NCBI GenBank assembly: GCA_003427395.1
Contig: BFEA01000016.1
Location: forward strand, 446,949 to 510,948
Direction of reading: 5' to 3'
DNA length: 64,000 nucleotides
Source: Chara braunii
Lineage: Eukaryota > Plantae > Charophyceae
Within the stretch, counting starts at the first letter, position 1. Every line of letters starts with the position of its first letter. The notes under the pieces were generated by a model that did not search any database, was not told where the DNA came from, and saw nothing but the letters and a program-made list of their open reading frames with translations. This document shows positions 58,767 through 64,000 of the stretch, piece by piece. Position numbers and translations under genes: made by a program.

Positions 58767-60818
58767 TGAGGAGATTGCTGAGGACGAGCCCGCTCCCTCT
58801 GAGGCCGTTCCTCAGCCGCAGACGGTCGCCTCCGAGCGTCCACAGCGCACTCATCGTCGCCCTTCGCGTTANGATGANTGACACTNTTATCCTCTATCTT
58901 TCCCCTACTGACTCACACCATCAGGTACTCCATCATCAGCTTCTTCAGGATGTCAGCGTTTTGCGGCTCTGCTTCGACATCGACTCGATTGCTACTTCAT
59001 CAACGTCATCGACCACTTCGACGACTTCAGCCACCTCATTGGCTTCAGCTACTTTGGACGTGACTACTTCACGCCACCACCCTACCCTGTACATTCCCTT
59101 GCATCTGTCGCATGATGGTTCTCACTTAGCTGGGTCTCTTTGAGTTGGGCTCTTCCTTGGTATCGCATAGGCATTGGGACCGTAGCGTTATCTTGGCTTC
59201 CCTGCTCCCAGATCTAGCTTCTTCCTCCCCAGTCGGTGAGTTGTGTGCATGTTTCCCTCACCCACTGCCCTCATCACCCTAGTGTCAGCCCTTGCATGCC
59301 TTCAGTTAGGCATATCTCCACCTTATTTCAGACTCCCCCTTTTTTCATAGTCGACCCTGCATGGTGTCATCCTTTTGTCGAGCATTACCCGCCCTGATGG
59401 TCTATCTGTTAGGGTCTTTGGTTTTGTTTCGCTACCACTCTCCCACCTTGAGCCTGATGACCTATCCCACCTTCACGTGTGACTGCCCTTAGGAGTTTCG
59501 ATTCTTAGGCTGCATTCACCCCCTCTGAGACCATCCCACCCTTAGTGGTTCAACGACAGGACATTATCTTGTGCCATATTGCTCTTTTTCCTTTCAGCAC
59601 TGAGGCAATTGCCTCCAGGACTTTAGGATTGTATATTGCTACATTTCACTTTTTGCTATTAGCTAGGATATGGATACCAGACATTTGCTTTTCTTTTGAC
59701 ATTATGTAGCTTATGATGCATCGCATAGAGTCCGCATGGAGCTTGCTCCGCATCCTAGATATAACATGTTGTACAAAAATCTTTTTTTTTTTTTCTTCTT
59801 CTTAAGTTAAATACGTGAATTGTCATAAGGGAAAACAAGTTTGTGGGTACTAACTGCAGTCGAGTGTTGGACAAACAGAAACTCGATAACAATAATTGCC
59901 AAAAATGATAAAAATAAAATAAAGAAGTATTGGGTAAGTGCATCATTCGTTTTGTTCGTGTTCATTAAAAAATTGCGGTGTCGGCGCGAATACCCTTACA
60001 AGGGTATCCGCCTTGGTTTTTGCAGGTGACAGGAAGAATGAGTATGGTTGAAGTAAGCCGCGTGGGGCGCGACTGCATCCGAGGCCGCCTTGGCCTGGTA
60101 CGAGGCATGTGGGCGCGAAATTTTAAGGCGCGCGTGTGATTTTTCTGATTGAGTGGGCGGCCGGTGTAACCGATCGCCCCGGACCGTGTTACGGGCTGGT
60201 TAAGGAATGAAAGTTCGTTTTTGGTCGGCGCGCGAGACCGACGGTGGGACTGGCGCGCCGGTAGGCGCACGGGACGGCCACGGCGCAGGGTGGTAGGCCG
60301 GCGCAGACACTTAGGGGCCGTGGGTACAAGTGTGGGCTGAAAGAGTGGCCGGGGCGGTATCTTGGCCAGGAGCATCACACGGTACCACTTATATGGGGGG
60401 CCGCACCTGCTGGTACCAGGCTTGGGCTTAGCCTTATCGGTTACGACATTGGATTATTGTCGTGGAGGTGCGGGGATCGAGGTCGGTGGGCGACCGGGCA
60501 GGGGCAACGGAGCAGCGAAGAGTTGAGGGGTTGAGGGTCCCGCGGGACTATCCCTTTTAGTTTTGTTGGGGGAGTCCAATCGTGGGGCCGCCCCGCAGGA
60601 CCAAAGGAGCTTTGGCGGGGCAGCTGCCGGTTCTTCTTGTGACCGTGGCCCTATATATGTCCTTTCCTTTTTTTGAGTTCCTAAAGGCTGGTGATGAGGC
60701 CCAGATGACAGGGCCGAAGGGCAGGCCTGGAGTATTCGGGATTGCTGAGGGCCAGGGTGGACCCCGGGGATGTCCGGGTGGCCTTCGAAAAAATGCAAAG
60801 GGGGGCCACTACGGGTGA

Positions 60819-61875
60819 TTCCTTCGGGACACCCATTGAGGCTGAGGCTAAACAGAGAGGGCTCGTATGACCCTTATGTGGGGTGAGGCACGAAAGGTCC
60901 GGGGATGAACCCGGACGCGAGCCGGGCCAGATGCACGCGCGAGAGCAAGGGGGAGGCCGAATGGCCGTCGAAAGAGCCGCGGGGCATCGTCTCGGCCGAA
61001 GTACTTCGGCACATCCGTTAAAATTGGAATAATACAGAGAGGATTTGCAAGCCCCTCACGCGATGCTGACACGTATAAACCCCAAAGGAGGCGCTAAGTT
61101 CGTGCGCTGAAGTAGGGTGGGGTTGCATCTGTACGGAGTTGGGAAGCTGCGGGGCACTGCCCCAGCCTAAGTTCGTCGGGACATCCGTTAAAACTGGGGT
61201 GATACGGAGGAGGTCCGCCCGACTACTGTGCCTAAGGATGGCCTGTGCCAAAGTCCAGGAGTAAAACCGGACGTGGTCCGGGCTAGGGGCGTGCGAAAGG
61301 TGGCGAGAGGGGGTGAGCAGGCCGAGTGGCCTTTGGTGCCGTGGCAGGGAGGTTAGCGCATGGTCGCCATGCAAGGGTGATATCCCAGGGGCCTGGAATG
61401 AACCCGGAAGCGGGTTGCACCGGGGGTGTGTAAATAAGAAAGGGGGCGGGTCTGAACAGTTGCTGGAGTTAAGGTGGTAGGTACCTGAACCGGGGCTCGA
61501 AAGGAGGCCGGGTTCGTGCAGGGATAGCAGAACAAAAGGAGGAATTACTGCGAGAGGAATCGTTCGGGGAAAGTCTGTTACGCCGGGAAGATTAGCACGG
61601 CCCCTGCGCAAGGATGAAACATAAGGATTTGGAAAGAACCCAGACGCAGGTTGCACCGGGTAAATATAGATAAACGGGGAGGCGGGGCAGGCGGGGGGCG
61701 ATCAGATTATCCCGTGGTTGGGTCCTCCCGGCGGCTGCTCATGGCGGTAGTGGAGAGGGGCCAGTCGGCGCGAAGTCCTTCGGGACATCTGTTAAAATTG
61801 GAACGATGCAGAGAAGATTAGCCTGGCTCCTACGACCAGGCAGGGCATATAAATCTGGAGGGGAGCTCCGGTTTC
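60819..61875 (+). repeat. Tandem array of ~6 diverged U6 snRNA-derived units
   Basis: U6-alignable blocks at ~60819-60916, 61001-61100, 61171-61272, 61340-61410, 61580-61645 and 61775-61870. Confidence 0.85.
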
Positions 61876-64000
61876 TTTTGTTGTTACTTTCTTTTCCCTA
61901 TCGCGGTCGTTTTGTTGGAGACGAGAATCACCGGATCGGGCGCTGCCAGACAACCTGTTGAGCGGCTGCAGGGAAGCGCTGGGCGGGGTGCCGTTGACGT
62001 CAACGGGGTCGAGCGGAGAACGAAGGGGTGAACGGGATGGGAAGCTGCGGCAGGTGCACGCGGCGCAGCGGACTCGAAGGTGGCGGAGAGGCGAGGTCGG
62101 GGCGCAGTGAGGAGGGGGTATCTCTTGTGATACCTCACGGAATCGTACGGGGAAGGAGGTGAGATCGGGGGTTTCGAGGGTAGCGAGCGTGATTCCGAGG
62201 TCGGGTTTGGGAGAGAGAAAGTAGCAAGGAAAGTGGAAGTGAAGCACATGTGTGGAGTGATGGTGGAGAACAACGAAGAAAAAGGGGTGAAAAGGTGGTA
62301 GGCCAACTGTTGACCGTTTTTGACGACCCCGGATCTGTTCCGGCCGGATCCGTTCCGGGGGCTCTAGGCCAGGGCGAACGTGACTATGAAGCCAGATTTG
62401 GAGAAAAGTCGGTGAAACAGGGGAGTGAAATGACGTTGAAAAAGGGGGAAAGGAATTAGTGAGATGCCGATGTACCTAGTCGGTCACCGGTGGTAGGTTC
62501 TTTCGAGCTTGGTCGTCCTGCTTATCAAAAAGGGGGGGGGGGGGAGGTGCTGCGAAGTGGGTGGTGTACGCGGACCTACCCTGCAGGATGGCGAGAGATC
62601 CGCCCTCGCTCCGTTTGTCGAACCAGAAGCAGGCGGGGGCAGAGCTGGGACAGACGAGCGGACCTACCTGCTAAGACGTGTCAGGCCCCGTGCTGGTAAA
62701 GGGATTCGACTTTGCCTGTGCATCTTGTCCGACCAGGGGATTTAGTCGGACCACGCTCATCCGACGACAGTGATAGCCATGGTGACTGCGAAGGTATCGA
62801 TCCACGTACCGCTGATAAGATTGCTCCAGGGTTGAGGGGCGACAGGTTGAAGACGTAGGCTCGGAGTCAATGACCAAGCTTAGTTGGTCAAGCGCTCGAG
62901 TCGTGTTCGGAAGGTCTTGGGTTTAACCCCCACGACCCTCTTGGGCATCGACATGCTGTTTTCTAGCAAGGTGACAACAGGCTAGCTGCGGGAGCTGCCG
63001 ATCGGATTGTTAGCCAATGAGCTGACTGTCCTTTCGGCCTGCGCGATTATGGACTGTGGGCTGCGGACAGGAGGCTATGGACTGCAGACTGCGCACTACT
63101 GTGGACTGCGGGCCACTGTGTACCGCTGCTGCTACTGCTGATCTACATCGCTGTGTCCTGTTGCAAGGGCGGCCGCTGGGCACGCAGTCTTGCTGCCTTA
63201 TGTTACTGTGCACTATTGCTCGCTGTGTACTGACGCTGTGCTTGCAGACTAAGTGCGGGCAACGACTGTTGTAGACTGTTCGCGTTTACTGTTGACCGCC
63301 GCCGTGCACGACTGCGGCCTACGGCTGGCTGGGCACAAGTTACACGGTTGCTGTGGACTGCGCCCGGACTGCTGATTGCGGGCGACTATGACTCCGGTTG
63401 TTGACCATCGCCGGATACAGCTGCTGCCTGCCGTTAGTGTTGCGTGTTCCTGCATACTACCATAGGAGGTGGCTGGTTGTTACGGGCTGCGGTGGATGGA
63501 CGTAGGGGGGTGACCGGGCTGGAAGGGGGGGGGGGGGGTTATTGCTGCAGATTGGGGGGTCGTCAGGGGCGAGACATCAAGAGTTGATTCATAATTGACC
63601 GAGCTGTCACATTGGCTACCATTTGTGGGGCCCTCATGCGCTGAAGGATTGAAGACCCTCTCGAGCGAGTCTGAGTGTATCTTCCCTGAATCTGAGAGTC
63701 TCAAACCTCCTCTCCCTGCCCTTCTTACTCTAAGTCTGGTCCTTTGGTTTTGAGAGGAAGGCGGCAGGCGGGCTTGTGACCCGTGAGCCGCGCCAAGGCC
63801 TTTGTGGGAGGTTCGCCCCACCGATTGCGGGAGCTCTGCCGGGACTCAGGAGGAGTCCTGGAGGCAGGGAACTGAGTGGTGATTCCCGGACTCCCTCTAT
63901 AAACCCAGTTATAACCCCTACTTGTACACCGTTCTACGGTTGACTGAGCGTATGGTGTGAACCCTGTATTTGATTTTGGGTTGACTTTCGGGACATAAGT

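Follow-up and report, generated by a model that had tools for sequence, protein, structure and literature searches.

A head-to-tail array of six diverged U6-derived units in the genome of Chara braunii

The stretch of the Chara braunii genome analyzed here is 64,000 nt long (contig BFEA01000016.1 of assembly GCA_003427395.1, positions 446,949 to 510,948 of the forward strand; hereafter the window). Six units derived from U6 small nuclear RNA (snRNA) lie head-to-tail on its + strand at 60,800-61,880, inside a G-rich non-coding stretch. The units are homologous to each other and share flanking sequences that are not part of U6. Each of them has lost core elements of U6, and none has a plant-type promoter. 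We consider it probable that these units form a real, old, and non-functional tandem array that arose by local DNA duplication of a single founder. An earlier sequence-only reading of the window had concluded that neither an ordinary cluster of U6 genes nor independent retrocopying accounts for the units, and this holds, as there is no promoter, no intact unit, and the flanks are shared. That reading had proposed a U6-derived satellite, snRNA cargo of a mobile element, or a multimeric U6-mimic transcript, and had set against these a pseudogene that was duplicated locally in tandem and then decayed. The last of these is the best fit to the data, with substitutions that appear to ignore U6 structure.

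The six units and their U6 elements

The reference for the U6 comparisons is the canonical Chara U6 sequence, which was fixed from two independent retrocopies, one at 22,331 of the window and the other at a second Chara locus (L003). The six same-strand U6-like blocks described in the sequence-only reading were borne out by Rfam, blastn, MAFFT, and an nhmmer profile. The Rfam U6 model suggested there as a check (RF00026, gathering score 44 bits) scores the canonical copy at 22,331-22,431 at 99.4 bits and has three + strand matches in the array. Unit F (61,775-61,877, 50.2 bits) and unit B (61,001-61,103, 46.9 bits) both pass the gathering score, and unit E is matched in its 3′ part only (61,583-61,648, 34.5 bits). 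No match to A, C, or D is reported by the model at E-values up to 10. Sensitive blastn with the U6 copy at 22,331 as the query adds the units at 61,171 (73% over 70 nt) and 60,820 (69% over 54 nt). The sixth unit, D (~61,328-61,424), lacks most of the 5′ third and was seen in a MAFFT alignment of A-F with the reference. An nhmmer profile of units A-E re-scores these five at E-values of 1e-26 to 1e-33, which is circular since the profile was built from them; besides the copy at 22,331, it finds no extra unit in the whole window. The array is laid out as follows.

60,800-60,976, + strand: unit A; leader, body from 60,819 with 52% identity to canonical U6, and trailer with GAACCCGGA at 60,908
60,977-61,146, + strand: unit B; leader GCGGGGCATCGTCTCGGCCGAA and body at 61,001-61,103 with 72% identity to canonical U6
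61,147-61,314, + strand: unit C; leader GCGGGGCACTGCCCCAGCCTAA and body from 61,171 with 62% identity to canonical U6
61,315-61,470, + strand: unit D; body with 48% identity to canonical U6 and trailer GAACCCGGAAGCGGGTTGCACCGGG, then TAAATAAGAAA
61,471-61,538, + strand: D-E interval, not clearly homologous to any unit; profile matches stop at 61,468 and restart at 61,539
61,539-61,700, + strand: unit E; body with a deletion of at least 10 nt within nt 13-33 and trailer GAACCCAGACGCAGGTTGCACCGGG, then TAAATATAGATAAA
61,749-61,880, + strand: unit F; leader, body at 61,775-61,877 with 73% identity to canonical U6, then T-runs TTTCTTTTGTTGTTACTTTCTTTT

Identity to canonical Chara U6 ranges from 48 to 73% for units A-F, and pairwise identity among the six from 38 to 65%. 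The distances from one unit start to the next are 182, 170, ~160-170, ~210-230, and ~215-235 bp. The array goes undetected by Tandem Repeats Finder, which shows how far the units have diverged. This also argues against the proposal of a U6-derived satellite, for which many homogeneous units are expected and not six at this level of identity.

The functional elements of U6 are the ACAGAGA box, the AGC triad, and the internal stem-loop (ISL), and a unit was regarded as potentially functional if it had all three together. None of the units A-F does. Four units begin at U6 nucleotide 1 with a recognizable 5′ stem-loop, as had been claimed and as could be read back from the alignment, and the box variants (ACAGAGA twice, ACGGAGG, GCAGGGA, GCCGGGA, and GCAGAGA) also read back as listed. 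ACAGAGA is kept only in A and B, both without the AGC triad. Unit A has lost the triad and its ISL stands at 9/23; in unit B the AGC has become TGC and one pair of the 5′ stem is broken. Unit C has the box ACGGAGG and a change of AGC to CGC. The triad is kept in E (box GCCGGGA), together with 21/23 of the ISL but in a unit with an internal deletion, and in F (box GCAGAGA), where the ISL stands at 11/23. The box of unit D is GCAGGGA, and an internal deletion has removed most of the 5′ third.

The plant U6 promoter for RNA polymerase III (Pol III) that we searched for consists of an upstream sequence element (USE, RTCCCACATCG) and a TATA box at about -30. No USE with one mismatch or fewer is found near the array. 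Reading of the spacers revealed no TATA box at -30 in any of them; the -30 regions are GC-rich and are homologous in B, C, and F. The absence of both elements, asserted from the sequence earlier, is confirmed at this level of scrutiny. A T-run terminator follows unit F alone and is missing from A-E, which also agrees with the earlier observation. With no unit holding all core elements, no USE or TATA box, and a T-run on F only, none of the units would be able to work as a U6, and we infer that the array as a whole lacks U6 function. This matters for annotation: the units at 61,001 and 61,775 should not be named U6 genes, even though they are above the Rfam threshold.

Shared flanks and the probable growth of the array

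The units are related outside of U6 as well as within it. A 26-nt leader just 5′ of U6 nucleotide 1 is common to three units (B, C, and F), with a weaker counterpart in A. The three leaders form a family with 69-77% identity over 65 nt, a length that includes the 5′ end of U6, so the related GC-rich leaders reported earlier are well founded in three units and more weakly in the fourth. On the 3′ side, the trailer starting GAACCC(G/A)GA in A, D, and E, continuing with GGTTGCACCGGG in D and E, was found as described. A 57-nt trailer is common to D and E (74% identity), and a 24-nt segment around GAACCCGGA is common to A, C, and D. The 25-nt core of the trailer occurs nowhere else in the window. 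Homology between the units in leaders and trailers that are not U6 points to descent from one founder, a U6 copy plus its flank, which was multiplied as DNA. Since independent insertions could not share flanks, the array appears to have grown by duplication of this U6-plus-flank unit.

The order of the units along the DNA gives some indication of how this may have proceeded. When the states that differ from canonical U6 are compared, pairs among A, C, D, and E share 13-19 of them, except for C and E, which share 9. Units B and F have few derived states in common with these four and are each other's best match. With A, C, D, and E denoted X and B and F denoted Y, the order is X Y X X X Y, which fits a duplicated X-Y dimer followed by local expansion of X. 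The founder would have been one U6 copy with ~70-130 bp of flank. Unequal crossing-over or replication slippage would have copied this DNA head to tail, probably by way of a two-unit stage and then a local expansion. All units would afterwards have decayed without selection for U6 function, drifting toward the G-rich composition of the 4-kb block in which they lie. We infer both this mechanism and this order of events from the sequences of the units.

The founder may have been a U6 retrocopy of the type made by long interspersed nuclear elements (LINEs). Such retrocopies are present in this genome. One of them is the reference U6 itself (22,331-22,431), a processed copy that ends in an A-rich tail (AAAGATAAATAAATAAAAAA) and is bracketed by a target-site duplication of 18 nt, AAAAAATCCCCAAACGCA (22,313-22,330) and AAAAAATCCCCAGATGCA (22,443-22,460), whose two copies agree at 16 of 18 positions. 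A second retrocopy, on the minus strand of L003 at ~20,727-20,826, has a poly-A of ~27 A and a TGGAAAA duplication. The hallmarks of LINE retrocopies, i.e., an A-rich tail right at the 3′ end of U6 and a target-site duplication, are absent from the units of the array. The earlier claim that the array shows neither poly-A tails nor target-site duplications is correct in that no unit has its own duplication or poly-A, and needs qualification for D and E, which have short A/T-rich stretches (TAAATAAGAAA and TAAATATAGATAAA) ~25 nt past the U6 part that resemble the tail of the retrocopy at 22,331. That retrocopy sits between minus-strand open reading frames (ORFs) at 20,410-21,333 and 33,044-34,414 with WD40 and RCC1-repeat domains, which are probably exons of host genes.

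The substitutions in the units appear blind to U6 structure. The 5′ stem, of four pairs, has no double-sided change, and its pairing (83%) is on a par with that of shuffled controls (78%); the covariation test that had been suggested for the 5′ stem-loop thus yielded no compensatory change. Several units have a derived hairpin (UCCGGG...CCCGGA) where the 3′ end of U6 used to be. Pairing is seen in 61% of its cells, with some double changes, and calibration of the tool gives a signal of this size in 5-25% of unconstrained alignments. Changes relative to U6 include 77 A>G out of 218, against 20 T>C. The rates in the securely aligned part are 0.23 for A>G and 0.14 for T>C, a difference that is not significant. 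Counting each site once, 21/24 A sites are affected against 8/14 T sites (p = 0.05, borderline). A strand-biased excess of A-to-G on the + strand is therefore a tendency only.

The neighboring Ty3/gypsy element, the host block, and alternative readings

Two larger features surround the array or precede it.

49,544-59,787, + strand: Ty3/gypsy copy with a 5′ long terminal repeat (LTR) and reverse transcriptase (RT)-RNase H-integrase; no 3′ LTR
59,980-63,950, no strand assigned: host block of ~4 kb; GC 0.58-0.61, G 35-38% on the + strand, CpG observed/expected 0.86-0.97

The pol ORF of the Ty3/gypsy copy (55,145-57,754) has RT, RNase H, and integrase domains, and its closest relatives are Chara braunii proteins. 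The copy contains a 400-N assembly gap at 58,367-58,766, and gene annotation of the 21.8 kb around pol gives a single gene. CpG observed/expected is 0.46 in the LTR and 0.99 in the interior. Homology to the family ends at 59,787, ~90 bp short of the expected 3′ LTR, and is followed by unrelated DNA. Three relatives (L002-L004, taken with 10-kb flanks) match the window from 49,544 to ~59,760; identity is 87-95% along the long internal stretches and falls to 80-86% in a few short pieces of L003. In each of the three, the internal end is followed directly by a 3′ LTR similar to the sequence at 49,544 and onwards in the window, and the array is absent (0/3). Thus, the array is not cargo of the adjacent Ty3 family, and the comparison shows, as far as these sequences reach, that it is independent of that family. 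The missing 3′ sequence of the window copy does not reappear up to 67,298 (7.5 kb); the copy would be either truncated or split by an insertion of more than 7.5 kb.

About 190 bp of AT-rich DNA separates the Ty3 break point from the G-rich block, and the composition of the array is the same as that of its flanks. The CpG observed/expected of the block contrasts with 0.46-0.80 in most of the neighboring DNA and approaches that of the young Ty3 interior. No Pfam domain was found in the eight ORFs of the block that were scanned, a set from which the minus-strand ORF at 61,792-62,247 was left out, and a search of the block and the window for hAT or other transposase domains found none. The minus-strand ORFs at 61,018-61,656 (over the array) and 61,884-62,306 (just downstream) are spurious. 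In the same block, 1 kb downstream of the array, a weak tRNA-like segment with recognizable D-arm and T-arm motifs lies at 62,877-62,933. It scores 18.3 bits (E-value 4.2), which is below threshold, and ARAGORN finds nothing there.

The DNA that starts at 59,790 and extends at least to 67,298 is a mosaic of non-coding arrays, comprising the U6 array, copies of CGCTCTATAAGTTTAGGT, and units of 123 nt. The CGCTCTATAAGTTTAGGT motif occurs in 11 copies, spaced 44-271 bp apart, at 18,689-19,633 of locus L001 (~64,151-65,095 in window numbering, past the window end). It is found neither in the window nor in three other Chara loci. The flanks of several copies are inverted repeats that differ from copy to copy (e.g., CAGAC...GTCTG and AGTCAGAT...ATCTGACT), and this array would consist of hairpins whose loop is constant and whose stems vary. 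Further on, at 19,904-20,477 of L001 (~65,366-65,939 in window numbering), are four or five tandem units of ~123 nt that contain TATAAAT, each with GTATAAATTTTGA and then ...GGGAAGCGCTGCCGAAATTT. By analogy, such a mosaic looks like the long non-coding part of a transposon.

The main alternative reading is one in which the array is a passenger cassette of a larger mobile element, e.g., a giant composite LTR element or a DNA transposon. The cassette would be copied along with the element and be one of several copies, and the decay of the units would have taken place in the lineage of the element. The earlier proposal of mobile-element cargo fails for the Ty3/gypsy neighbor and persists in this form, which we regard as possible, if rather doubtful. 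Mosaics of this kind are typical of long non-coding transposon parts, and this one begins exactly at the Ty3 break point, as an insertion would. The undepleted CpG of the block, like that of the young Ty3 interior, is also in its favor and is odd for old resident junk. It thus counts against a long-resident array that decayed in place, as does the uneven decay of the units, with B and F 27-28% diverged and A and D 48-52%. However, no part of 59-64 kb was found to recur elsewhere in the window or in 80 kb from three further Chara loci. Searches of the DNA around the array turned up neither terminal repeats nor a target duplication, a primer binding site (PBS), or a coding domain. A Cassandra-like arrangement would have the same cargo in two terminal direct repeats of one element, with a PBS and a polypurine tract (PPT); over window positions 1-64,000 and on to 67,298, no second copy was found. 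The rest of the Ty3 element also does not resume within 7.5 kb. A more elaborate version seems to us unlikely: the ~1.1-kb array would be a conserved, multi-locus cassette of some Chara mobile element that is still undescribed, either a giant composite LTR element or a DNA transposon, and that is made up of small-RNA-derived arrays; the cassette would have originated from co-packaged U6 RNA and may be used as Pol III-related or RNA-structure modules.

Three further explanations concern the units themselves. The array could be the relic of a once-functional tandem U6 gene cluster, in which the USE and TATA box of the 70-80-bp spacers have mutated past recognition. The 170-182-bp period of A-C would leave about enough space for a plant-type promoter, the T-run retained by F resembles a Pol III terminator, and 54-64 nt upstream of F there is a USE-like TCCCGTGGTTG that differs from TCCCACATCG, by reading, only in transitions and one extra base. 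The search at one mismatch nevertheless found no USE, the -30 regions that B, C, and F have inherited in common are GC-rich with nothing like a TATA box, A-E have no terminators, and the A/T-rich tails of D and E are of the retrocopy kind; we give such a relic only a slim chance. It is very improbable that the array is transcribed into a multimeric or unit-length U6-like RNA that influences splicing, with its altered boxes acting as decoys toward U4, U2, or 5′ splice sites. Boxes that vary while the 5′ stem-loop stays recognizable in four units would suit such an RNA, as would the derived hairpin that replaces the U6 3′ end, with its paired cells and double-sided changes. Set against this are the lack of a promoter or terminator in five of the six units, the mosaic loss of core elements, the absence of covariation in the 5′ stem, and the 5-25% of unconstrained alignments that give a hairpin signal as large. 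Of the words of the 1.8-kb array stretch, 60-81% are present in four DNA runs, all of one sample and study, and no run listed as containing the stretch is on record as RNA. The species has 17 other runs with Logan contigs, of which 14 are presumed to be RNA, and these contain next to no words of the stretch, which is weak evidence against an abundant transcript. The proposal of a multimeric U6-mimic transcript thus finds no support, either in the runs that contain the stretch or in the pattern of substitution. The idea of six independent LINE-mediated U6 retrocopies that landed side by side is hardly credible. U6 retrocopies are common here, those at 22,331 and in L003 both have a tail and a target duplication, and D and E have their tail-like A/T stretches. 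The shared non-U6 leaders and trailers contradict it, as do the lack of target duplications and poly-A tails for each unit and the placement of all six on the same strand at regular spacing.

Comparison with known systems

Pseudogenes of U6 are familiar, chiefly from mammals, where they are scattered as single retrocopies, and snRNA pseudogenes and tandem duplication are in themselves a known kind of thing. Literature searches returned no description of U6 arrays in Chara. In mammals, LINEs have made U6 retropseudogenes and U6-L1 chimeras, which are dispersed single copies. The likeness to the Chara units is that both are dead U6 copies starting at nucleotide 1. The mammalian copies are dispersed and single, whereas in Chara one copy and its flank would have been multiplied in place, and the units are without tails and duplications of their own. 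In a genome of the plant lineage, U6 copies that are also multiplied into a local array would bear on how freely U6 RNA is reverse-transcribed, and afterwards reshuffled, in Chara braunii.

Tandem arrays of snRNA genes include human RNU2 and RNU1, and in some protists U6 is linked to repeats of 5S or spliced leader (SL) RNA. These arrays resemble the one in Chara in being head-to-tail repeats of a unit made up of an snRNA and a spacer. They are homogenized, promoter-bearing, and expressed, in contrast to the Chara array, with its 38-65% identity, no promoter, and no intact unit. SINEU elements are short interspersed elements (SINEs) with heads derived from snRNAs (U1, U2). They share with the Chara units a 5′ part that comes from an snRNA and a tail unrelated to it, and differ in that they are dispersed, have target duplications, and have an internal promoter. 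The promoter of U6 is external, and the Chara units are in tandem.

Cassandra is a terminal-repeat retrotransposon in miniature (TRIM) that carries 5S ribosomal RNA sequence in both LTRs of a defined, many-copy element. As a case of a Pol III RNA that is a passenger in non-coding transposon DNA, it is the model for reading the Chara array as cargo, although no LTR pair, PBS, or second copy was found here. If it is true that the array travels with a transposon, it would be the U6 counterpart of the 5S-carrying Cassandra elements.

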